Of a stretch of DNA of 64,000 nt, positions 5,203-58,380 are shown piece after piece. The position numbers and the translations under genes are program-made. Position 1 is the first letter of the stretch; each line of letters starts with the position of its first letter. The notes beneath the pieces are model-generated. The model searched no databases. It was not told the DNA's origin and worked only from the letters and a program-made list of their open reading frames with translations. The DNA is from Takakia lepidozioides (lineage: Eukaryota > Plantae > Bryophyta), in contig CM060733.1 in assembly GCA_030704615.1 (NCBI GenBank), forward strand, positions 29,822,001 through 29,886,000, read 5' to 3'.

Positions 5203-5564
5203 GAACCCCTCATTCCCATGTCGGACATACAAAAGATTCAAACGCATTATGTCATTGTCCTTCAAATAATCCAGCACTACTTGCTTCACCACCTTCGCAG
5301 CCTCTACGCTTGGATAGTTTTTTTTGTTGACCTGACTATCCCGTTCATGTGCATGTTTACGCTTCCTACCTTTACGCCCACTTCTCGATGAACCCCCTGA
5401 CATTGCGTTCGAAGCAATGTTTCCGGACATGATGAAAATACTCTACGGAATAGACCCAGACTATTGATAATCTTATATACTAGCGGACCAATTTCCTCAC
5501 CATCTATTGGTATAGTACCCAAAGCAAACTGCCCATTCGCGCCTTGCCACGTGTCCAGGTAGCG

Positions 5565-5790
5565 GTCGCACCTATGGGTGGTCGCAACTAATAACAAAAC
5601 AAAAAAACTGCTGCAACCACCCCCTACTGGTGGTCGCACTTTTCTAAAAACAAAAAGAAAATGTGCGATCCCCCCTAAGCGGTCGCACCTAATAACAAAA
5701 AAAAAAATTCTTCAACCACCACCGGCTGGTGGTCGCACCTATTTAAAAAAAACAATTGTGCGACCACCATTAGCAGTGGTCGCAACTGTT
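5565..5790. repeat. Palindromic array (TGCGACCACC-n-GGTGGTCGCA plus A/T spacer), left part
   Basis: About 5 units at roughly 50 bp spacing; continues at 17007 after the Gypsy insertion. Confidence 0.85.
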
Positions 5791-5798
5791 AAAAAACA

Positions 5799-6125
5799 TG
5801 TCAAATTAATTTACCACTAGTATGAAACTAGCTAGGAAATAGCTAGCTTTTACATATTAATATTTGGGATTGGCCCAAGTGTCAATCCAGGGGTCAAGGC
5901 AGATTTAGGCCCTGGAGTGGTTATCTTCACGGCAAGCGCGGGAGGCTCATCTTTCTCGAGTTGAGCCTCACCGCGCCTAGCTATGGCGCCGTAATGTGGA
6001 TTTCCCATGGCGTGGGGTGCACTTGGCTTGACTTGTATTTGAGTGATGAGGTTATATATGCATGAGTTTATGCTTCAGCTTTGTGAGCTCGCATGAGCTT
6101 GTGCTTGTATTCTTCTTCTTTATCA
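5799..6125 (+). repeat. Repeat A1
   Basis: Near-identical to 16502-16828. Confidence 0.93.
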
Positions 6126-6137
6126 CTCGAGAAAGAT
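6125..6137 (+). promoter_or_regulatory. Putative self-complementary primer-binding site
   Basis: ACTCGAGAAAGAT is the exact reverse complement of 5949-5961; no TGG tRNA-type PBS is present. Confidence 0.6.
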
Positions 6138-7649
6138 AAGCTCGTATCTGTGAGTGCCAGATACGAGTTAGTTGTAGCACTTGTGGTTTTTGCTTGAGAA
6201 TGAGAGAAACCAAGTTGTTATGCAAGGAGCACCGTGGAGCTCTTGGTTGTTAGAAGCGGAGGCGATGTGGGTTACGAGGTGGTAGACCTTGGCATTCGAT
6301 CTTCAGCTTCAGAGATGAAAGCACCATGCTGCAGGTAATTCCAGAGCACCTTGATGGTTTCAGATTGTGTACATGCATGAGCAAGCACGATTGGGAAGAG
6401 GACCAGTCAAGAGCAGGTTATAGTGGCTTTGGTGGCAAAGCTGAGAACTGGACTTGGGAATGCGAGCTTTCATTGTGTGAAGGATTGCAAGACCAACGAA
6501 AGGGCTGATTTGGCTTGGGGCAAATCAGTGCACTTTGTGGAGTATGGTGAGATTGGGTTTCAATCTCGAGCTTCAGCATTGAGAGGGCTCTTGTCATGGC
6601 AAGAGCAGGGCTGGAACAGGAGCTAAGAGGTGCGGCAAGGCCATGGAATGTGCACCTAGGGTTTCAGAGCTTGGAAGAAGAGCTCTTGCACCACAAGAGA
6701 AGTGTCTTGTGGCTGGAAATGTAAGCCTTAGGGTTTCAGGAGCTTGGCAAAGGCTGTGGAGTGCTTAGTCTTGTCTTAGAGAGCATCAAGGAGCCAAGGA
6801 GCCAAGATAGGGGGCTGATATCTCTTGTGTGAAGAGGTTGCATGTGTGGAGCATGTATTCAGCTCATTGAAGCTTCCATCTTCAAGCTTGGAGGGCAAGC
6901 AAGGAAGAGGGAAGGGCTGACTTCCCTTATGTGAGGGCAATGCATGTGTGGAGCATGCTATCAGCCTGGTGAAGGCTTGCACTTTCAGGTGTGTGAGTGC
7001 AAGAAAGGAAGGAAGGGGCTGGTTTCCCTGTAGGGCATGTGGAGCATGCTTTCAGCCTGCTGAAGCTTGTATTTTCAGGTTTGTGGGTGCAAGAAATGAA
7101 GCAAAGGAGCTGATTCTCTTATGGTGAGAGTGGGGCATGTGTGGAGCATGCCTTCAGCCCATTGAGGCTCTTGTTTCAAGCTTTAGAGAGCTAGAACGGA
7201 AGGTCTAGGGCTGGTTTCCACTTGGAGTGAAAGAAAGCACTTGTAGGGCCTATGTGAGTTGGGGTTTCAACTTCAAGCTTGAAGGGAGCGCAACTCTTGA
7301 AGCAGGTGTAGGGGCTGGAATAGGCTCTAAGACAGATGCTATGGCCAAGGAAGTGCTTGAATGAGTGCTCACAAGGGCTGGGAACCAGCAGGGCTTGGTT
7401 GTTTGCCATTGAGTTTAGTGGCGTGTTTGGGGAGGCTAAGTGAGAAAGAAGGCTTGGTTTGTGGCAACCACCTCATGGCTTAGGGCTACTATGGTGGTGT
7501 GTGGGAGCCGAAAGAGCAAGAATACCTTGCTGATTTCCTCACAGCCGCCATAGCTCGGTGGAAAGAAGCCTAGAGTCCAAGAGACACAAACCCTAGCTTG
7601 GCGTGGCTAAACCCTTGGAGAAATGGCTAAACTGCTAGAGCGGCCATGG

Positions 7650-8310
7650 ATGGGGCTGTGACGGGCTGTGAGGGGCTGTGCCGGTGGCCTGGGCTGTGAC
7701 GGGCTGTGAGGGCTGTGACGGCTGTGGCCTGGGGGCTGTGATGGGCTGTGCCGTGGCCTTTTGGGGCTGTGACAGGTTGTGCCCGTGGCCTGGGCTGTGA
7801 GGGCTGTGACAGGCCGTGCCAGGCCTTTGGGGCTGTGATGGGCTGTGAGGGCTGTGGCCCTGAGGCCTTTGGGGCTGTGAGGAGCTGTGACGGGCTGTGA
7901 GGGGCTGTGACAGGCCGTGCCTGAGGCCTTTGGGGCTGTGACGGCTGTGAGGGCCTGTGAGGGTACCTGTGAGGGCCGGGCTGTGGCCTTGTGATGGGCT
8001 GTGGACAGGCCTGGCCTTTGGGCTGGGGCTGTGAGGGCTGTGACAGGGCCTGCCTTTGGGCTGTGACTGGAGGGGCTGTGACAGGGTGCCTGTGGCCTGT
8101 GGGGCTGTGACGGGCTGTGGGGCTGTGACAGGCTGTGACGGCAGGCTGTGTGTGACGGGCCTGTGACAGGCTGTGACAGGCTGTGCCCAGTGGCCTGTGG
8201 GACTGTGACGGCTGTGACAGTGAGCTGTGTGGCCTGTGCTGGTCTGTGGTGGCCCGTGTTGACCTGTGGACGGCCTGTGCTGACTCGTGGAGGCACTGGT
8301 GACTGCCTAA
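7650..8310 (+). repeat. G-rich minisatellite (GGGCTGTGAC/G, about 10-bp unit) in the 5' internal region
   Basis: Dozens of GGCTGTGA motifs visible. Confidence 0.9.
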
Positions 8311-9152
8311 GGACTGGCATGTGGTCTTGAAGGCCGAATTTTGAAGCTCGTGGAGGGCGGTTTGAGGAGTATCTTCATGATATTCCCATGGTCATGCAAG
8401 TGAGGGAAGAGAGGAGAGGAAGTGTTGGGATGAGGGCATGCTGGGGTTAGGCATTGCTTTAGCTTCTCTTCCTCGTAGTTTCCACCCTCTCATTAGGCCA
8501 AGACCTTTCCGTAGGTGGAGGCAAGAGTCAGTCCGGGTTTGGGCTGGGGTGTCCTTGCAGAGCAACACCGTGGAGTTGTTTTTGGTGTGGGGGGTTGTCG
8601 TTCTGATTTCTTGTGTTTGGATCCCCTCCATACCTGCATGCTTGACTGTGCGCCATGCTAGTTTTGTGTGGGCGCTTGTTTTATAGGTGATTGGTCCGGA
8701 TTTGATCACCGGCCAGTCCTAGAGCATGCTGTCGATGGTGAGGCTGGGGTGATGACCAGCCAGACCATCATTGTTTCTCCTGTGGTGAGGTTGGAGGTGA
8801 TGACCAGCCAACCATAGGAGTGCTTGCGGTGGATGCAGGTACAGGTGTAGGCTATGTTAGGAACTTAGTATTCCAAACCATAAGCCGCAACAGGTTCTCT
8901 ACCCGTTACCTTGTGGAGAGGGGTTAGGGACATGTTCATGACCGGTTGAGTGTCAACACGGAGGTGCCACTAGTTGCTGGGGACAGTGCCGGTTCGAGCA
9001 CTAGCGATACTAGTGGGTACACGAGACGAGGTGTGCGTTTTTAGGCCACCTTCACCTCCTGTGTCTTCTACGGAAGGTTCTGATTCGATTGTGAATCAGG
9101 AGGACTCATACCGGCGGTGCAAGTTGTTTCTTTGCCATTGTTGTGGGACACA

Positions 9153-10440
9153 ATGGAGGAGATGTATGGAGCTACCAAGGGGCCACGAAGGTACTCTGGG
9201 CGGTGGGCACCATCGAGTTGGATGATTTTATCCAAGAGTTTGATAGTTGGTGTGATTTGCAGCAAATGCGCAATCCACAACTATTTACGCCTTTCATGGC
9301 ATGGAAGGGGCTGTTTCAGCACCTTGAGGGGCCGCCTATGGATGATTACCATGAGTTTCAGGCGGGGGCATGAGGTTGAGATCGAGGAGTGGAGGATGTA
9401 CTGGTCACCCGACTATGTCTCCATCACTAGGGGCACTAGAGCCACGAGGGCAGTGGCTACACCTGCCGCTGCACCGGCAGCTTCAGCAAGTAGCAGTGGG
9501 ACTAGGGGACTGTGGTACAGTAGCTACGACGTCCACCCAAGCCACTACCGCACCTAGCACCCGTGCCTGCCTTCAACCCTGTTGTGGAGTTCTTCGAAGA
9601 GTTGAGAGGGAACTACCAAGGGGTGAGGACAGAGAAGTTGCGGAGCTTGCAAGAGTTCCAACGGAAGCCGACCGAGAGCTTGAGGGAGGCTTTCACTCGC
9701 ATGAGGCGCTTGATAGGAATGGACAAGGAGCTGAGGAGAAGGGTGCGGGATGCAACTCTCCTACAAGCGGCCCAACCCACCTTAGCAAATGTGTTTTTGC
9801 TGGCAGAGCGGATAGAGCTCAACATGGTGGAGGAACGAGTGGTCATGGTGGGATTTGCTAAGGAGACACCACGGGGTAGTGGTGCTCCTAGCCAACCACT
9901 ACCTCAACGTGCTCAAGGCAACAAGGGGGCTCAGGTGAAGCTCAGGGAAGGGCAGAGAGGACCTCAGATGCAGGGGTCTCTCCCTTCATTTGCTGGCCAA
10001 CAACGGGCGGATGTGGTGTGCTGGACATGTGGAGGACCCCATGTCAAGAAGGATTGCCCAGAGGGAGGCAAAGGGCCGGCACATGCACAGCCTGCACAGT
10101 TGCAGTGTGGGCATTGTGGCAAGCACGGGCATGGAGAGGTATGGTTTGCATCCTGAGTTGCGCCCAGGCCAGTTCCAAGGGAACAATGGTGGCCGGGGCG
10201 GTGGAGCAGCCCAGAGAGGACGAGGTGGCCAGCCACGAGGTGCAGGCCAAGGGCAAGCTCAACATGGCCAAGGACGCGGAGGTCAGGGTGTTGACCAAGG
10301 CATGGCCAACCGGCTTCAGCAGCTAGAGCAGAGGCTCGCTGCCATGGCTACAGCTCAGGTGGTACCGGCTCTAAGGCCGGATGGTCCACCTCCTGCTCCT
10401 GAGGCATGGGATTCATGTGTGGAGCAGCACTACCACTAGT
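9153..10440 (+). pseudogene. gag with two zinc knuckles (frameshifted)
   Basis: ELDDFIQEFDSWCD, QRKPTESLREAFTRMRRL, CWTCGGPHVKKDC, CGHCGKHGH. Confidence 0.8.
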
Positions 10441-11039
10441 GCAGGTGGAGTCTGCTGCAGCCGTGACTCGAGGAGCAGCACGAGTTCCTGAGCCACGAGG
10501 TGCAGAGGTGGAGTTGGATCCACAGCGTGGGGAGGCAAGCCGTCAGGCTAGGCTTCCTCAGTCATTCACATTGGCGGAGACAGTGTCGACGCCATCCATG
10601 GCACCTAGTTCTCGCCCGACTGTTACCGAGGCGGAGGTTACTATGCCATTGGGGAGAGCTACACGGGTAGCACCACTACCTAGTGTTGCCAAGGCTACGG
10701 CAGCTAGTGTGCTGCTAGGAGCGGCCACATCTGTGTGCCAGGCTCCATTGTTCTCGGCTACCATGATTGCGACGCCGGGGTAAGACCAGCTGAGGTGTTC
10801 AGGCTGGCAGCTACACTCTGTGAGAGTGGGGAGGTTACTTCATCTTCTGCGGAGATAGTGGGAGGTGTAGTGCCGGAGGGATCCTCGGATTTGAGGGTCA
10901 AGACTGCCACGGCGGCGCCATGGCAAGCTGCAGCTGCCAGGTTGATGGAGCTGCCAGCTAGGCCAGCCATTGAGCGCGCCATGGTGACACCTGGAGTTGT
11001 CATGTTAGACAACCAGGATGGCATTTTCTGTTTGAGTGG

Positions 11040-11430
11040 ACCGGCAGGCAAGAGGTACCGGCCACTGCGGTCTTGTTGACTCGGGAGCTCAGCCATTGAT
11101 GCTGGCAGAGCTGCTATTGCAGGCTTGGGCCTCACGGAGGCGGATATGGAGCCTTGTCCTTTCCAGATACAGACGTCTCTGGGAGGATCGGAGCAGGCTC
11201 GGGGCATGACACGGCGTGAGTTGGCTATCAGACTACGGCCGGATCACCCTACAGATGGCTCAGTGATGCGAGCCAAGGCCATTGTGACAGACGCAGTCTC
11301 ATACGATGTCCTGGTTGGTGGGGCAGTGTTGTACCCATGGGCTTCACCTGGATTTTTGGGAGGAGTCAGCTTCCTATAGGCCTGCATGGCAGTCAGGGGA
11401 GGGCCGGCGTGCAGCTCCCTGTGACGTTCA
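11040..11430 (+). pseudogene. Aspartic protease domain
   Basis: D-S-G (GAC TCG GGA, 11078-11086) followed by AQPLML; YDVLVGGAVLYP downstream. Confidence 0.75.
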
Positions 11431-11764
11431 TTGGGGAGTTGCGGTTGCCAGCGGGGCAAGATGCCGACACTAGCAGCATTCACAGCGGCAGTGAGTTGGC
11501 CTAGAGAGTTGCTTGAGGCAATGCTCATTCAGAGGATGTGCCACCTCCGGAGAGCAGGATGACATGTATGGTATGGCGGAGTTGCCTACCATGGTTGCTC
11601 AGACTCCATTGTGGGGCACGAGCAAGGATTTGCAGCGGTTGCTGATTGACGGGTGCAACAAGCCTGGGTGGAGGCTTTTGTACCGTCAGGAGAGGAGGAG
11701 AGTGCGGGGATTGCACCAGGACCACCTCAATTGTCTCCATTGGACACCACACCTATTGTGTGGA

Positions 11765-12660
11765 GCATTTGTCTTCTGGACTTGTTTGGCGGGATCAGCA
11801 CCGGATTGGCTGCTGTGTTACAGGCAGGTGTACGTTCGGCGTTACCTGTATGTGGAGAGGGATGAGACTGCACGACGCGTTCACTTCGCCATTTGCTCAG
11901 TTGGTGCAGCTACCCTGCTTTGTTGTGTCTACATTCGTGGATATCAGCAGCCTTGCCAGCAGACATTTCGTTGCTGGGGGCGCAGATTTGGAGCGGTTGG
12001 CTCCATTGATCTGGTAGTGGCAGGTTGGCCCTGCCAAGGGCATTCATCAGCCGGGCATGGCAATGGATTGCGAGACTCGAGGTCGGTCTGTTTTGGGAGA
12101 TGTGCGGGTTTTGCGCCACTTGCAGCTTCATCAAGCTGTATCTCAGCATACATCTTGGAGAATGTGCCACTGATGGGCGATTCTCGGGCCAGGGTGATGG
12201 CCAGTGTGCATCAAGTCGGTCGTGGCTTGGGTCAGCAGTGTGCTGGATGCAGCTAGTGGGGTCACGGGCTCATCGTCCACGGCTATGGTGGACTAACTTG
12301 ATGCCACCGCACTGCTCAAGCGTGCATTTGATGGGGTGCAGCGGCCAGCACACCTCACAGTGGATGCATTTTGGACACAGGGAGGCAGTCTCAACGTGTG
12401 AGACACGATGACCGTTCGCCTTTGTAGTGGTCAACAGGTGGGTCAACCACGAGCAGCATTACCTACACTGCTCAGCTTCCCAGGATCCATGCTTTCGGGA
12501 TGTGGACCTGGCCTCTGTGGGATGCTCAGTTGCAGCAGTTAGTGGAGCCTAATGCTGACGAGCGTGAGCGGGCATGGGTTTTCCACTGGCACTGAGGCAT
12601 CACGTCGTCAGTGTTGGGGCAAGCAATGGATCTCAATTGCTTGACCTGGATTATCAGCTT
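11765..12660 (+). pseudogene. C5 cytosine DNA methyltransferase domain (DNMT3-like) within pol, frameshifted
   Basis: Motif I LLDLFGGISTG (11776); II YLYVERD; IV DLVVAGWPCQG (PCQ at 12029-12037); VI YILENVP (12158); VIII RAHRPRLWWTNL; IX EPNADERERA-GF; X VLGQAMDLN, in canonical order. Confidence 0.88.
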
Positions 12661-13139
12661 GGCTATGGCTGAGCAACGCAGAGTGCGGAGTACACTTCCC
12701 TTGGGTCTCTGCCTACCTACCGACGGTACAGGCAGTGAGTGGGGGCGAGCATGAGGACCACGGGGTAGCATCCATGGCACACGTGGGAGGTGCTCGAGGT
12801 TCAGAGGGAGTTGGCAGCCAAGGCGGCTGTGATGGATGAGGTTGGGGATTCTTCTCGGGTTGAGGAGGTCCTCAAGATAAGATGATGGGGCAGGATGAGG
12901 CCTTGTCATTGACTGAGCAGGCAGGGAGTACTGCTCAAGAGGTTGCGCATAGCAACCACGGGACGCGTCCTCTACCTCTAAGCCCACTGGACTTAAGGTT
13001 GCAGTTACGGAGGACAATTGGGAGCCTGACATTGGACCCATTGTCACCGAGGAGAGAGACGACGTATACGGCGGTTCCTGAGGGCTTAGGAATTGCTTTG
13101 CCTTCAGTTTGAAGGACTTGGGAGCACTGAAGGGTCAAG

Positions 13140-14450
13140 AGATCCGTATTGAGTTGGCCACTGACACGCCAATCTTTCGAGACCCTATAGATATAGTGAC
13201 ATGGAGAGGTCTTTGATTCAGATGAGGACTCAAGATCTCTGGGAGGCAGGTTTGGTGGAGCTCTCTGGTGGAGAGTATGCTTCAGCCACAGTGATGCCAG
13301 CCAAGAAGGATGTCTATGGCAATTGGACGAGAGACGTATGTGCGGTGATTACCGGCCTGTAAATCGTCAGACCAAGTCCGATAAGTATGCCATGCCAACA
13401 CCAGAGGAGATCTTTGATGCCATCGGGCATGCTAAGGTCTTTAGCACTTTGGATTTACGATCCGGATATCACCAGTTGCCAATCAAGGAGGCGGACAAGC
13501 AGAAGACGGCATTCTGGGGGATCAATGAGCACGGCAAGGATTGCCTATATCAGTGGCGGTTCTTACCATTTGGGCTTAAGAATGCTCCTGCAGAGTTTCA
13601 GAGAGTCATGGATAGGATTCTAGCAGGGTGGACTTTGCTCGGTGCTACATAGATGACATCATCATCTTTAGTGTTACGATGGAGGAGCATGAGACACCTT
13701 CAGGTGGTATTGGAGCGCTTGAGAGCGCACGGATTGAAGTTGCATCCGGGGAAGTGCAAGTTTTTCCACAACCAGATTGAGTATCTGGGTCACATGATAT
13801 ATCCTGGAGGATTGGGGGTACAGCAGACTAAGGTAGAGGCCATTGCACAAATTCCACGCCCCACGGATGTGAGCCGAGTTCGAGCTTTCATGGGGTTGGC
13901 AAACTATTATAGACGGTTTGTCAAGGAATTTAGTACCATTGCAAAGGCTCTAACCAAGCTGACCAAGGTGGACCAGGAGTGGCAGTGGGAAGATGAGCAG
14001 GAACGAGCTTTTCAAGAGCTCAAGGCGAGGTTGACCTCGGCGCCTATCCTGAGACGACCTATCAGGGGGCGTCCCTTTCAGCTGCATACGGATTGGAGCA
14101 TGCTGGGGCTTGGAGCGGTGCTCACACAGTGGATGATGAGGGAAGAGAGTTCGTAGTGGCTTATGCTAGCCGCTCGAACAACGCTGCAGAGGCTAAGTAC
14201 AGCTCATATGAGGGAGAGTGCTTAGCTGCAGTGTGGGCCGTGGCACACTTCAGGTGCTATCTATACGGCAATCTTTTCACCCTTGTCACGGATCACCACC
14301 ACTCAAGTGGTTGATGGAGTCAGACAAGCTTACGGGGAAGCTTGCACGGTGGGCACTTATACTCCAGGAGTATGACTTTCAGGTTGTGCATCCGGGTTTG
14401 GTCAATCGGGATGCGGATGGATTGAGTCGCAATCCATGCACGAGCCAGCA
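13140..14450 (+). pseudogene. Reverse transcriptase and RNase H
   Basis: RMCGDYRPVN, LDLRSGYHQ, LPFGLKNAPAEFQR, YIDD (13646-13657), LHTDWSMLGLGAVL, EGECLAAVWAV, TDH, ADGLSR. Confidence 0.93.
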
Positions 14451-14730
14451 GGATGACACTGGAGCTCGGTGGCATGGTGAGACGGACGAGGAGATGGTGG
14501 GGCACGCATCTGCATTTTTGTGTATCTTGGCATCGGGAGGTCAGGTTGGACCTACACACAGGGATGACTGTAGACGGAGTGTCTGAGGACCCTGAGGCTA
14601 GTGATGAGCCAGGTGGTGCCAGAGATATACATGAGGATTCGGCTGTTGGACTACCTCCGCACGGAGACACGGCAGCCACTGTGACTGCCAGGGAGAGGGA
14701 TCGGATCCTGCAACGAGCCAAGAGGTTCAA

Positions 14731-16062
14731 GTGGGAGGGGATACACCTACTTCGAGTGTGGGAGGATGGTCGGGTGAGGATTGTGCCTCACCCACACAGC
14801 GTGCACGGTTAGTGCGGCATGCCTATGAGGAGTTGGGGCATTTTGGAGTGCGACGCACTCACAGTTTACTGCAGGGGCAGTATTGGTGGCGTGGTATGCA
14901 TACAGAGGTGCAACAGTTCGTGGCTAGGTGCATGGTGTGTGACAGGGTGCGTGCTTCATTCAACGCCCCTACACCACAGTTGCATCCTTTACCAATCATG
15001 GGATTGGGCTACAGGTGGAGTCTTGACTTCGCAGGACCGTTGCCACTGACTATGCGCCACCACAGATATGTGTTGGTGATGGTGGAGCACTTCTCCAAGT
15101 GGATTGAGTTGGTTCCATTGCCTGACAAGGCTAGAGGGGGCTGCGTATGCATTCTTGGATCGTGTGCTTAGCCGATTTGGTGCTCCAGCTGAGATACTCA
15201 CGGACCAAGGGAGAGAGTTCTTGGGGGAGTTTCAGGCTTTGTGTGATAAAACCTTGATAGACCACCGCACCACTTCTCGGGATCATCCTGAGGCCGATGG
15301 CTTGGCAGAGAGAGTTGTTCAGACGGTGAAGAGGGGTTTGCGCAAGTATGGCTTGCAGAAGGGACACCTAGGAGATTGGGATCTCCAGGTTCTTTGGTTA
15401 GCCATGGGCTACAGGTTCAGCAAACAAGCATCACTTGCTCCTTCTCACCATATTTCCTTCTCTTTGGCCGAGAGCCGGATTTGCCTGCAGCCATTCGTAG
15501 GGACACTGCTCAAGTCCTTAACCTTGACGATCCGGATGTGTGGGTACGTGCATGTGATCAGCGTGCAGAATTGTTCAAGAAAGTCATGCCCATGGCTTTT
15601 GAGAACCTTGCCATTGCACAACACTGTGATACGTTGAGGTATGCCACTATACGTGGTGGAGGATATCGTCCTGAGGTTCGGAGGTTTAGCCCTGGTGACT
15701 ATGTTTATTTGCAGCAGACTGTTCCTACGACTCCGGATGTTACTGCAGGACGTGTTATTCTGAGGGTTCAAGAGGTGTTGCCCTCAGGGGTCCTGATCTT
15801 GGAGGGTCGGGATGGCATGACTTGGAAGGACCATGTGCGTAATTGTGCGCCATGTCACCTTCCCAATGTCGATGGCAGAGTTGACCCAAACTTGGCAGTG
15901 GTACCTGCAGGTTTGAGGTGCATGCTCTGTGGGTCTGCCAAAGGGGCAGCCACCATGCTGGTGTGTGATCGATGCTCAAGGGGTTGGCATATGGGATGTT
16001 TGACACCACCTCTTGAGAAGGTTCTTGACGGAGATTGGTTGTGTCCACATTGCTTGGGATAG
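14731..16062 (+). pseudogene. DDE integrase with C-terminal PHD finger
   Basis: HHCC (H..EELGH...CMVC), SLDFAGP, TDQGREF, GLAERVVQT. PHD CMLC...CDRC..GWH..C...W.CPHC at 15919-16053. Confidence 0.9.
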
Positions 16063-16322
16063 TGGCAGTGGACATGACTGGAGGCAGCTAACAAGACATG
16101 GGAGGCCAAGCTCATAGGAGTCAATACATGAGATCCCAAGCTCAAGTTCACAGGTTGCAAGACGGCGACTAACGATGGGGCAACTCTTGCACCCGGCCTC
16201 TTGATCTATCGAGTTTGAGTGTAGTAGGGATAGTGGTGGAAGACTTAGTGAGGCTATGGTCACTATCACATCTTGTGGCTACCTGGACTTAGAGGGACCT
16301 AAGCACCAGCTAGGGGGGCGAT

Positions 16323-17006
16323 TGTATGGACTAGTGACTGCCATAGTGGGCAGCATAGTGGCAGCCTAGTGACTGACTAGTTGTAGCCTAGTGGTTGGAC
16401 TAGTGGCTGGACTAGTGGTATACTAATGTGTGGTGTGCACATGTGTTGTGTGGTTTAAGACAGCGATGTAGTTGTGTAGCGATATGTATGCGCACGACAG
16501 CTGTCAAGTTATTTTACCACTAGTATGAAACTAGCTAGGAAATAGCTAGTTTTTACATATTGACATTTGGGATTGGCCCAAGTGTCAATCCAGGGGTCAA
16601 GGCAGATTTAGGCCCTGGAGTGGTTATCTTCACGGCAAGCGCGGGAGGCTCATCTTTCTCGAGTTGAGCCTCACCGCGCCTAGCTATGGCGCCGTAGTGT
16701 GGATTCCCCATGGCGTGGGGTGCACTTGGCTTGACTTGTATTTGAGTGATGATGTTATATATGCATGAGTTTATGCTTCAACTTTGTGAGCTCGCATGAG
16801 CTTGTGCTTGTATTCTTCTTCTTTATCATTGTATGGACTAGTGACTGCCATAGTGGGCAGCATAGTGGCAGCCTAGTGACTGACTAGTTGTAGCCTAGTG
16901 GTTGGACTAGTGGCTGGACTAGTGGTGGACTAGTGTGTGGTGTACACATGTGTTGTGTGGTTTTGGACAACGATGTAGTTGTGTAGCGATATGTATGCGC
17001 ACGACA
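16323..17006 (+). repeat. B1-A2-B2 terminal repeat block
   Basis: PPT AGGGGGGCG 16312-16320; B1 16323-16499; GC spacer; A2 16502-16828; B2 16830-17006. Confidence 0.92.
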
Positions 17007-17750
17007 AACAAGAAAAATGTTGCGACCACCCCACTGCTGGTGGTCGCAGCTATTAAAACAAAATACAAATTGTGCGACCACCAGTAGCGGTGGTCGCAAC
17101 TGTTTTTTTTGTTTTTTTAAATGGTGCGACCACCCCCTGCTGGTTGTCGCACCTATTTTAAAAAACAAATGTTGAGACCACCCCCCTGCTGGTGGTCGCA
17201 ACTGTTATAAAAAAAAATAAAAAAAATCTGCAACTACCTCCCTGCTGGTGGTCACAACTATTAAAAAAAAATTAAAATTATGCGACCACCCCTGCAGGTG
17301 GTCGCACCTATTTTTGAAAAATAAAAATATTGCGACCACCACCTGCTGGTGGTCGCACCCAATTTTTAAAAAAGTAAAAATGTGCGACCACCCTCTGCTT
17401 GTGGTCGCACCTATTAAAAAATAAGTAAAAATGTGCGACCACCCCTTTCTGGTGGTCGCACCTATTTTTATTTTTTTTAAATTGTGCGACTAACTGTTGC
17501 TGACGGTCGCATGATTGACAATATAAATCATAATATATGAATTTTATAGAGAAATAATGAAGTCCACGTAATGAGGCCACATCGGTTGCCTCGTCGGTTC
17601 TCATAGTAAATAGTCAATAGTAACGTAAAAAAATAAACATAATTATGTACAATAACATCCGTTTTGGACGTGACGTGACGCACGTCCATCGCTGACGTCG
17701 GACGTGACGCTGACGCGTCAACGCCACGTCACGTCCAAATTTGCAACTAG
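17007..17750. repeat. Palindromic array, right part, ending in a 15-bp inverted repeat plus CTAG (possible Helitron-like terminus)
   Basis: About 10 units at 50-52 bp period. TTTGGACGTGACGTG (17663-17677) pairs with CACGTCACGTCCAAA (17725-17739); CTAG at 17747-17750. Confidence 0.75.
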
Positions 17751-55827: not shown

Positions 55828-56454
55828 TGATGAGCTGGTTGCAGCTGCATGTGTAATAGGTAACTAGGGTAGCACGTGCCGTTGGCCCAAGTGTCCAGTG
55901 TCATCTAAGCCCAAGTGTAAGATCTTCTACGTATCCAAGCGCGTCCTCTATGTTGAGGCCTAAGTGCGACCTCCAGGTAGCATGTGCCTTTGGCCCATGT
56001 GTGTGAAGAATTGAAATCTAAGACCAAAACACTATTTTAATTAATTCTGGACTTTTGGCTTAAATCCGGACTAAACTTAATATATATTTGAATTAAAATT
56101 AATTGAAATATTAATAATATCATGGTGTAATGTGTGATTGAACATTGTGAAATTATGGGTGATGTCATACTGGTTTTAAAATGTGTCATATAAGAGGTCC
56201 ATTTGACATTGAAGTGCTCAATGTGCAGTAGTAGTATTGAACAATTCATTGAACGTCCACTTGGAAGTCGAATAATGTAATATTCCATTGCAAGATCACA
56301 ATAAACAAATGGGTTGGATCGAACATGGGCCAGACTCCTACATTACCATACTCGATACAACTTGCTAGTAATTTTATTGATTGAATCTTCATATCAAGCA
56401 CAATGTTCACATACCACGCCATTGGAATGAATCATGTTTTGGATGTGACAAGGG

Positions 56455-58380
56455 CAGTAAAATATTAGAATAGCATGAAACATTCGGAAGAGGTACTAGG
56501 GTAGTACAATAAGGTTTGGGGTGTAACTAGAGAGAAGTGCAATAAGGTTTGGGTTTATAGTAAGGGTAAGGGTTTAGGGTTTGGATTTAGGGTACAAAAG
56601 GACAAACAAATATGATAGACTCACACTCGGTAGAAATAAGAAATGGTTGAGGAATTTGATATCCCTGTAATCATTCTGTCATACCTTATCCAACAAAAGA
56701 AAATATTAAAAGAGCATGAAACATTGAGAAGAGGTAACATGGTAGTACAATAAGGTTTGGAGTGCAAATAGGGTAGTACACTAAAGTTATTGGTTTATGG
56801 TAAGATTAATGGCTTAGGGGTGATGGTAAAGGTAGGGTTTTCGGTTTGGGTTTAAGGTACAAATGGACAAACAAATATGGAAGACTCACACTCGCTAGAA
56901 CTTGGTGTATATTAGTAGGATAAAAAATAAAAATAAAAATGGAGAAACAAATATTATGGAAGAGTCATTGGGCCGGAAAAGTATTTAGATTGAGGATTCG
57001 TCCTTAAAACCTAGTATTAAGATACATATGGTTATGGTATGGATACTTCATTCCCATTTGTAGGGGAAGGGTAAGGGTTTAGACGTAACAATGGTGTAGG
57101 GTTTTGTTTAGGGTTTCCGACGAGGGTTTAGGGTTTGGGTTGAAGGCAGAAATGATGAGCATACATGCCGGAAGACTCGCACTCGCTACAACTTAGTGTG
57201 TGTTAGTAGGGTACAAAATGAGAATTTGGATGTAACAGTGAAGAGATTTTGATAACCATAATGGTTATGGTTATGGTATGGATAGTTGATTCCCATTTGC
57301 AAAGGCAAGGGTAAGGGTTTTGGGGTAATGGGTTAAGGGTAAATGTTTAGTGTTTTATAGTAAACCTGGTTTAAGGTAGGGATTTAGGGTTTTTGTTTAA
57401 GTTACAAAATAGACAAACACTTATGGAAGACTCCAATCGCTACAACTTAGTGTTGTTAATAGGATAGTAAGCAAAATAAAAATGAAGAACCTAATATTAT
57501 TGAAGTGTAGTCATTGCATCGGACAAGTATTTAAATGAAAGACTCGTCCTTGGAACCTCGTATTAAAATACATAGAAAGCAAAGTTCGATAAAAAAATGT
57601 ATGTCAATCCAAACCAAAGGCAAAACCTTTCGCAAAGTGAAGGGCGAAGAGATTTGAATAAGTATAATAGTTATGGTTATGGTATGGATACTTCATTCCC
57701 ATTTGTAGGGGAAGGGTAAAGGTTTAGACGTAACAATGGCGTAGGGTTTTGTTTAGGGTTTCCGACGAGGGTTTAGGGTTTGGGTTGAAGGTAGAAATGG
57801 TGAGCATACATGCCGGAAGACTCGCACTCGCTACAGCTTAGTGTGTGTTAATAGGGTACAAAATGAAAAATTGGATACATTGAAGAGATTTGGATAACCA
57901 AAGGTTATGGTTATGGTATGGATAGTTGATTCCCATTTGCAAAGGGAAGGGAAAGGGTTCTGGGATATTGGGTTAAAGGTAAATGTTTAGGGTTTTATAG
58001 TAAGGGTTTAGGGTAGGGGTTTAGGATTTTTGTTTAAGTTACAAAATAGACAAACACTTATGGAAACTCCAGTCGCTAGAACTTAGTGTTGTTAGTAGGG
58101 TACTAGTAAGCAAAATAAAAATGAAGAACCTAATATTATGGATAAGTATTTAAATGAAAAACTCGTCCTTGGAACCTGGTATTAAGATACAACATAGAAA
58201 GCAAATTGTAACATGCCTAAGTGCATGTCAATCCAAACAAAGGAAAAAGCTAGCGCAAATGTGAAGGGAGAAGACATTTCAATAACCGTAATGGTAATGG
58301 TTATGGCTATGGTTATGGTATGAATAGTTCATGGGCCATTTGCAGAAAATGGTAAGGGTTAGGGGTAATGCAAACATATA
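56455..58380. repeat. Hierarchical tandem repeat with telomere-like TTTAGGG motifs
   Basis: Block at 57029 repeated at 57674 (645-bp period); about 240-bp subunits at 56460 and 56701. Confidence 0.8.

Follow-up and report, generated by a model that had tools for sequence, protein, structure and literature searches.

A retrotransposon of the Ty3/Gypsy type with split terminal repeats spans positions 5799-17006 of a 64,000-nt stretch of DNA from the bryophyte Takakia lepidozioides (contig CM060733.1, positions 29,822,001 to 29,886,000), hereafter called the window. Two repeated sequences, A and B, are arranged in the order A1-internal region-B1-GC-A2-B2. The element starts with TGTC, ends with GACA, and the tetranucleotide AACA is found at both flanks. 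The same layout, with the same ends, recurs in relatives hosted by liverworts and found in metagenomes. It characterises the family as a whole, being no artefact of assembly and no isolated case, and as a structural description it is near certain. In textbook retrotransposons with long terminal repeats (LTRs), as in retroviruses, linear cDNA integrates by its two termini, and circles are deemed dead ends. Here the ends used by the integrase lie next to each other in the middle of the LTR, and the joint of the U5 end to the U3 start is retained in every copy; terminal integration of a linear cDNA therefore cannot make these copies. The elements are probably permuted at integration, a DDE integrase using an internal attachment (att) site on cDNA in which U5 and U3 have been joined.

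Split repeats and predicted primer sites of the Takakia element

The repeats, the putative primer sites and the junctions of the window element are the following.

5795-5798, plus strand: left copy of the target site duplication (TSD), AACA; the same tetranucleotide is at 17007-17010, and excision with one copy restores the flanking array
5799-6125, plus strand: A1, the 5' terminal repeat; starts with TGTC (integrase-level left end) and ends with ...TTTATCA (U5 end)
5949-5960, plus strand: ATCTTTCTCGAG, the putative self-primer, at which the genomic RNA, and with it R, presumably begins (5' end); fully complementary to 6126-6137
6126-6137, plus strand: predicted minus-strand primer binding site (PBS) of the self-priming (Tf1/sushi) type, directly 3' of A1; pairing kept in four haplotypes
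16310-16321, plus strand: polypurine tract (PPT) in the context CTAGGGGGGCGA, predicted plus-strand primer site; the purine run adjoins B1
16321-16499, plus strand: B1, corresponding to the 5' portion of U3 in the LTR defined by reverse transcription (RT-level LTR); ends with CGCACGACA
16496-16505, no strand: perfect palindrome GACA-GC-TGTC (GACAGCTGTC) at the B1/A2 boundary; GC spacer at 16500-16501
16502-16828, plus strand: A2, defined by repeat comparison with A1
16824-16833, plus strand: A2/B2 joint of U5 end and U3 start, equivalent by its sequence to an LTR-LTR circle junction
16828-17006, plus strand: B2, the 3' terminal repeat; ends with GACA (integrase-level right end)
17007-17010, plus strand: right copy of the TSD, AACA; matches 5795-5798

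A1 and A2 (327 nt) are 97.2% identical, and B1 and B2 (179 nt) 96.1%. A single A is common to the end of A and the start of B (positions 6125, 16321 and 16828), and its assignment is ambiguous. Probes for A and for B each have two matches in the window, where none is expected by chance, and no further copies of the element were found there. The window element is one old, frameshifted, decayed copy, with a repeat divergence of about 3%. It is inserted in a tandem array of palindromic units of ~52 bp, and its excision together with one AACA regenerates a normal inter-unit spacer. The array is seen at 5560-5798 and 17007-17470; each unit has a GC-rich hairpin (GTGCGACCACC...GGTGGTCGCAC) and, after it, a run of A.

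Two junctions are informative. The halves of the palindrome found at the B1/A2 boundary coincide with the genomic termini of the element, TGTC at the start and GACA at the end, and this palindrome presumably serves as the internal att site. The A2/B2 joint, TTTATCA/TTGTATGG, equals the end of A1 (TTTATCA/CTCGAG) adjoined to the start of B1, where TTGTATGG is preceded by GCGA (GGGGGGCGA/TTGTATGG).

The CTAGGGGGGCGA motif preceding B1 is kept in the window element and in the Marchantia, Calypogeia and moss-type metagenome copies. Its conservation directly 5' of B1 fits a PPT that sets the start of U3 at the start of B. At the other end of the internal region, a segment located 172-185 nt before the end of A has its reverse complement in the 11-12 nt that follow A1, and its position is fixed in Calypogeia and moss-type copies as well. 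The paired segments are as follows.

Window element: inside A, ATCTTTCTCGAG; after A1, CTCGAGAAAGAT
Calypogeia copy L008: inside A, AGTTCTCTAAG; after A1, CTTAGAGAACT
Calypogeia copy L009: inside A, AGTTCTCCAAGT; after A1, ACTTGGAGAACT
Moss-type copies: inside A, AGTTCTTTGAG; after A1, CTCAAAGAACT

The four lineages differ in sequence on both sides, yet pairing is kept, as expected of compensatory changes. All 12 of 12 positions pair in the window element, and a score of 13/14 was reached by none of 500 shuffles. When the RNA running from the inner segment to the PBS is folded, the two ends are paired in the window element (z = -7.0), and a 15-bp stem is formed in the metagenome copy L036. Covariation and folding thus support the view that the PBS is a self-priming site of the Tf1/sushi type. 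A PBS of the tRNA type was dropped once self-complementarity and covariation appeared; no tRNA genes, sought as a match to the PBS, were found within the window. Within A, PBS-like copies were noticed just upstream of the self-primer segment in L009 (~2005-2030) and in A2 of the Marchantia copy L099. In L009 this copy and the self-primer segment make up a perfect hairpin, CTTGGAGAACT-AGTT-AGTTCTCCAAG.

A self-priming site after A1 implies that U5 ends where A ends, and that the RNA would start ~175 nt upstream. With the PPT before B1 and the self-priming PBS after A1, the RT-level LTR corresponds to B-NN-A, where NN is the 2-nt spacer, and A1 includes the 3' part of U3, R and U5. Given this LTR, the integrated copy is circularly permuted, and keeps the U5/U3 joint. 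An earlier reading of the window, made from the sequence alone, had proposed most of these features. The order of repeats, AACA duplications and TGTC...GACA ends that it described are exact. The RT-level LTR of the B+A type gained the support of a conserved PPT and of a primer site with compensatory changes, the type of which that reading had left unspecified, and the identity of 16824-16833 with the U5/U3 joint was borne out by the ends of A1 and B1.

Recurrence of the layout in bryophytes and metagenomes

Sequences 62-83% identical to the piece encoding the integrase and the PHD finger were found in Marchantia polymorpha, Calypogeia fissa, Sphagnum and many metagenome contigs. The nearest relatives of the window element are in liverworts. 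Remoter relatives are hosted by Haematococcus and Scenedesmus, and none was detected in a scan of viral_contigs. The metagenome sample included 80 fetched loci and 7 more, and counts refer to 15 complete copies and ~47 independent 3' ends. Haematococcus L004 and the contig L002 were left out of the reading of ends as too rearranged, and Marchantia L007 and L010 because they consist mostly of N.

The layout A-int-B-NN-A-B (int, internal region; A-int-BAB for short) and the TGTC...GACA ends are found in Marchantia, Calypogeia and ~15 independent metagenome copies. In Calypogeia L008, A1 spans 1482-1821 and B1 10826-10923, and GT, A2 and B2 follow up to 11362; the element is flanked by the TSD CTAA. 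In Calypogeia L009, A1 spans 1861-2202, and the B1-AC-A2-B2 tract extends to 16903; the TSD is AATG. The Marchantia copies L005, L006 and L099 feature the int-PPT-B-GC-A-B organization, and in one the two B units are 100% identical. In these three A1 is beyond the 10-kb flank that was fetched, and their TSDs thus fall outside reach. On the chromosome 2 locus L099, the 736 bp directly following B2 (11360-12095) are repeated 10.7 kb upstream (683-1418) with 97.4% identity. The upstream copy has no adjoining A1, and may be a segmental duplication or a member of another repeat family.

The ~15 independent metagenome insertions are organized as A-int-BAB or int-BAB. Exact TSDs were identified in L023/L091 (TCTC), L032/L079 (CATA) and L036 (AAGG), imperfect ones in L094 (3/4 match) and in L076, in which AATG is displaced by a small 5' deletion. 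Overall, exact 4-bp TSDs flank at least 10 copies (the window element, L008, L009, L023, L032, L036 and four copies of the A-int-B form described below), and the layout is found in at least 21 independent insertions, from separate assemblies and different species. Within single elements the A pair and the B pair are similarly diverged (identities of 97.2/96.1% in the window element, and 98.5/99.0, 97.7/97.1, 92.1/93.8, 88.4/88.2 and 92.2/91.3% in others). As the two values track each other, both pairs were identical at insertion, and a later patchwork is ruled out. The sequence-only reading had named as support the recurrence of A-int-BAB copies with 4-bp TSDs at TGTC/GACA, which is what was found, and had equated the genomic ends with the palindrome halves, where 4-bp TSDs are located in many independent copies. 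The outcome that it had named as refuting, ordinary BA-int-BA copies, was observed in none of the 15 complete copies and ~47 independent 3' ends, and B was never found upstream of A1. Solo A-B repeats were not found in the ~1 Mb of fetched loci, which are no genome survey.

All relatives have the palindrome, and its spacer is invariably 2 nt long; among them are the distant L001 (a metagenome contig), L002 and L003 and the Haematococcus copy. Young copies carry GC as the spacer, and older copies GT, AC or AT (GT at 10924-10925 in L008, AC at 16465-16466 in L009). Each variant is derivable from GC via transitions, as might result if a methylated CAG/CTG site were deaminated. The RT-level ends of the Calypogeia copies read TTGG...GTTTA instead of TG...CA, and TGTC...GACA and the flanking CGCACGACA and TGTCA are invariant. 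Since it is the palindrome halves that are conserved, these must be what the integrase recognises. About 15 of 16 independent copies have an A/B joint of the same precision as the window element. The exception is a lineage represented by L023, L037 and L091, which are the same insertion, and carry at the joint a 17-nt filler along with CGA from the PPT (10836-10857 in L023). The filler partly duplicates nearby A sequence, and together with the three PPT bases looks like the product of imprecise end joining.

Proposed integration from joined cDNA and competing explanations

The life cycle that would produce these copies may be depicted as follows. Transcription would start within A1, ~175 nt short of where A1 ends. 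By its 5' end the RNA would fold back on the 11-12 nt following A1 and prime the minus strand as in Tf1, as suggested by covariation, and the plus strand would be primed at the PPT preceding B1, in line with its conservation. According to the standard model, the cDNA should carry the B-NN-A LTR at each end, and be organized as BA-int-BA. Its U5 end would be joined to the U3 start, and the joint is observed in each copy as A2/B2. The integrase would bypass the cDNA termini, and cut after CA, on each strand, the ...GACA-NN-TGTC... sequence in the PBS-proximal LTR. Given a 2-nt spacer, cuts placed after each CA give 2-nt 5' overhangs, as in normal 3' processing. Insertion of the opened A-int-B-NN-A-B molecule, with duplication of 4 bp of the target, would follow; ends and TSDs are those observed, and the cut is presumed.

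That permuted copies derive from the use of an internal att site on U5/U3-joined cDNA is the explanation that we favour, with some reserve. A closed 2-LTR circle is the simplest joined form and a plausible intermediate, but a less likely proposition than the former. The broader notion, that a whole lineage of retroelements encoding DDE integrases, from chlorophytes to liverworts, obligatorily integrates from U5/U3-joined cDNA, either circle or concatemer, via an intra-LTR att palindrome, is tentative, and we would put it slightly short of an even chance.

Some observations weigh against integration from a joined, circular cDNA. A 2-LTR circle has two identical palindromes, and opening the other one yields ABA-int-B. 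The 15 complete copies include 8 A-int-BAB, 7 A-int-B and no ABA-int-B. Equal frequencies are expected of a symmetric circle, and the 0 versus 8 distribution is at odds with it (binomial p = 0.008). The absence of ABA-int-B may be due either to a bias to the PBS-proximal LTR, or to fast decay to A-int-B, or to an intermediate that is not symmetric. Moreover, about 26 independent metagenome copies lack A2-B2, being organized as A-int-B or as int-PPT-B followed by flanking DNA (among these L015, L020, L042 and L077, as well as L024, L071, L082 and ~19 further 3' ends). TSDs are exact in 4 of the 7 A-int-B copies with a visible 5' end (TGTT, ACTA, TACA, ATTA), and match at three of four positions in 2 of the 7. 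In a tree, A-int-B copies are interspersed among A-int-BAB copies and have similar branch lengths, a pattern that does not separate an origin at integration from later deletion. The A-int-B form was found in none of the 6 copies from liverwort genome assemblies (Fisher p = 0.005). These copies could derive from 1-LTR circles opened at the same palindrome, from the collapse of ABA-int-B by A x A deletion, or from B x B deletion of A-int-BAB. The youngest could also result from collapse in short-read assemblies, as L096 and L094 disagree at one locus. Finally, the cycle is reconstructed entirely from integrated copies, and the positions assigned to the RNA start and to the poly(A) site, the latter expected inside A2, are predictions. 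The sequence-only reading had proposed that cDNA circularises and that the integrase uses an intra-LTR att site. The permutation, the internal ends and the U5/U3 joint sustain the second part; the closed circle is no more than plausible, and a prediction of its simplest form failed, ABA-int-B copies numbering 0 against 8.

The main rival is a joined intermediate that is linear, either head-to-tail or over-extended cDNA, and it leaves both the permutation and the use of an internal att site unchanged. For example, plus-strand synthesis might jump from the U5 end of the template onto the U3 start, to give LTR-int-LTR-LTR(partial), of which the integrase would take the leftmost start of A and the rightmost end of B. 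Such a molecule is inherently asymmetric, and this would account for the 8 A-int-BAB, 7 A-int-B and 0 ABA-int-B copies. A joint precise in ~15 of 16 copies suits synthesis by a polymerase at least as well as cellular end joining, although the filler in the L023, L037 and L091 lineage resembles the latter. Head-to-tail copies sharing one B-NN-A are seen in the contigs L002 and L003 (in L003, 8.9 kb recur after 11,535 bp, the two stretches being 99.99% identical), but these tandems may be genomic arrays or assembly products. The ends of the L001 contig overlap by 23 nt, and this overlap, like the L002 and L003 tandems, may denote tandem genomic arrays, circular DNA or assembly products. End-to-end template jumping lacks direct support in the family, and on balance we regard a linear joined intermediate as unlikely.

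Two other explanations are far weaker. The element may have been inserted as ordinary BA-int-BA and turned into A-int-BAB by later rearrangement, or the window copy may be a one-off or a misassembly. This is what one would expect by default of an LTR element that has a DDE integrase, and nothing specific speaks for it. It is already contradicted by a layout repeated in at least 21 independent insertions, 4-bp TSDs placed exactly outside TGTC...GACA, the constant absence of B upstream of A1 and the equal divergence of A and B pairs in each element, and is highly improbable. Alternatively, the family might move as the Ngaro/PAT-type DIRS elements, a tyrosine recombinase, either its own or provided in trans, joining circular cDNA to the target. 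The A1-int-B1-A2-B2 organization is indeed the split-direct-repeat layout of DIRS-order elements (PMC8969392; PMC5890265). However, no Phage_integrase domain (PF00589) was found in the scanned open reading frame (ORF) pieces of the window, some small ORFs being outside the scan, or in the intact relative L001, whose ORFs encode an H2C2 plus rve integrase. In addition, a 4-bp TSD and TG...CA termini are signatures of DDE enzymes, and DIRS elements have no TSDs. DIRS-type mobility is already contradicted by the TSDs, and scarcely credible.

Coding content and relation to known elements

The leader and the coding remnants of the window element are listed by position.

6811-8280, plus strand: leader, untranslated, holding two blocks of internal tandem repeats; the first (6811-7219) has units of ~100 bp, the second (~7650-8280) G-rich units of the GGGCTGTGA type
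9563-10156, plus strand: gag remnant with two CCHC-like zinc knuckles (translation: CWTCGGPHVKKDC and CGHCGKHGHG)
11513-12411, plus strand: remnant of a C5 cytosine DNA methyltransferase, frameshifted; PF00145 at 11513-12256, PCQ and ENV motifs seen, homologues found
13323-14586, plus strand: reverse transcriptase and Ty3/Gypsy-type RNase H with stops and frameshifts; RVT_1, RT_RNaseH_2, RT_RNaseH
14731-15637, plus strand: DDE integrase, H2C2 zinc domain and rve core, over two frames; PF17921, PF00665
15376-16062, plus strand: C-terminal region of the integrase with a PHD finger at its end; PF00628, E = 9e-11

The leader, with its repeat blocks, lies between the PBS and gag. An antisense ORF of 237 aa (7607-8320) is probably a by-product of the second, G-rich repeat block. 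The gag remnant of this decayed copy has no Pfam match. By domain search, RVT_1 was located at 13323-14156, and RT_RNaseH together with RT_RNaseH_2 at 14093-14586. When compared for membership of the Dnmt3 class, the methyltransferase gave only weak matches to PDB entries, DNMT2 (1e-5) and DNMT3B (6e-4). An unrelated peculiarity of the window is the region 56001-58000, which has a low G+C content (0.36) and a strong GC skew (+0.37), unlike the remaining window.

An intact relative is found in L001. One of its ORFs encodes a protease and a DNA_methylase domain, another a reverse transcriptase, RNase H, integrase and PHD finger, and a further one a zf-CCHC domain. The order reverse transcriptase, RNase H, integrase is the same in Pol of the window copy and in the intact L001 ORF, and the RNase H is of the Gypsy type. 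The assignment to Gypsy elements with a DDE integrase, made in the sequence-only reading, is thus confirmed by the H2C2 and rve domains at 14731-15637 and the RNase H. DNA methyltransferase and PHD finger, which the sequence-only reading had not named, are both intact in L001, L002 and L003, and the former is present also in many related polyproteins. In the lineage its position is between the protease and the reverse transcriptase.

The closest precedent is KnitGypsy-Dnmt3 from Klebsormidium nitens, described as a Gypsy element whose Pol includes a methyltransferase of the Dnmt3 type (de Mendoza et al. 2018, PMC5890265). The legend to Fig. 4c of that paper mentions a DIRS-type repeat structure along with Gypsy-type domains. 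Going by this published description, KnitGypsy-Dnmt3 and the window family are alike in having a Gypsy Pol with a C5-DNA methyltransferase inside the polyprotein and DIRS-like repeats. The host of the former is a charophyte alga; the latter is hosted by liverworts, moss-type metagenomes and chlorophytes. Homology searches brought up no Klebsormidium protein, sequences of this alga being outside their reach. The notion, held in the first reading of the window, that A-BAB layouts are absent from Gypsy elements with DDE integrases is out of date in the light of that legend. In the parts of PMC5890265 that deal with KnitGypsy-Dnmt3, TSDs, att palindrome, PBS/PPT analysis and mechanism are not given, and a literature search retrieved no paper on the mechanism, TSDs, att palindrome or primer sites of split-repeat Gypsy elements. 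The layout was therefore already known in one alga; what is new is that bryophytes and chlorophytes have it too, together with the TSDs, the conservation of the palindrome, the site of self-priming and what these imply for the mechanism.

Elements of the DIRS order feature split direct repeats and have no TSDs (PMC8969392). The window family shares with Ngaro/PAT-type DIRS elements the A1-int-B1-A2-B2 order and replication with joined ends, the B1-A2 junction corresponding to the joined termini. It differs by having a DDE integrase in place of a tyrosine recombinase, TGTC...GACA ends and 4-bp TSDs. It is not a DIRS family by definition, because no tyrosine recombinase was detected and TSDs are made. 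It has the Pol order of Gypsy elements, TG...CA ends and a short TSD (4-6 bp class), and lacks a pair of complete LTRs on either side of the internal region. Integrated copies read A-PBS-int-PPT-B-NN-A-B instead of LTR-PBS-int-PPT-LTR.

In Tf1/sushi self-priming, the 5' end of the RNA pairs with 11-12 nt located after U5, and the same has been predicted for plant Tcn1 elements (PMC6317226). Tf1, sushi and Tcn1 resemble the window family in self-priming and in TGT...ACA-type ends. They are ordinary LTR-int-LTR elements with a chromodomain, whereas in the window family the repeats are permuted, a PHD finger takes the place of the chromodomain, and a DNA methyltransferase is present. Membership of the Chlamyvir group was considered and rejected, as Chlamyvir elements have chromodomains, and PHD fingers are unmentioned in the Chlamyvir literature examined.

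Use of junctions between joined ends has parallels. The integrases of foamy virus and HIV-1 cleave palindromic LTR-LTR junctions (Delelis et al. 2005, 2007; PMC1180852, PMC1905944). Panganiban and Temin, in 1984, reported an internally placed circle junction as an integration site, as recounted in a passage of PMC11054761. Retroviral 2-LTR junctions and the window family are alike in that a palindrome of att halves is cut after each CA, a cut that is presumed in the latter, and in that an internal junction leads to permuted proviruses. In retroviruses this is a side or disputed pathway, and the palindrome is the U5/U3 joint itself, with a 4-nt spacer. In the window family the palindrome is intra-LTR, has a 2-nt spacer, and is apparently the sole att site used. 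In the IS3, IS30 and IS256 families of insertion sequences (IS), abutted ends, set a few bp apart on a joined intermediate, are the active substrate of the DDE enzyme. These are DNA transposons that do not rely on reverse transcription, and the likeness of their circle junctions to the window family is functional only.

If integration from joined cDNA is correct, a retroviral-type integrase can adapt to an att site that is internal and junction-like, and use no other substrate. The layout with split direct repeats, thought to be diagnostic for elements encoding tyrosine recombinases, would arise also with a DDE enzyme, and this would affect the classification of transposable elements. Software for LTR finding would miss or misfile such elements. 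The presence of a DNA methyltransferase and a PHD finger ties the family to questions on transposons and host chromatin. The family would furthermore represent a fixed natural version of the abandoned pathway in which the retroviral circle junction is the precursor of integration, and bridge LTR elements, DIRS elements and IS circle-junction transposition. As Marchantia is transformable, it would also provide a natural, tractable system in which to ask how joined cDNA may serve as integration precursor.

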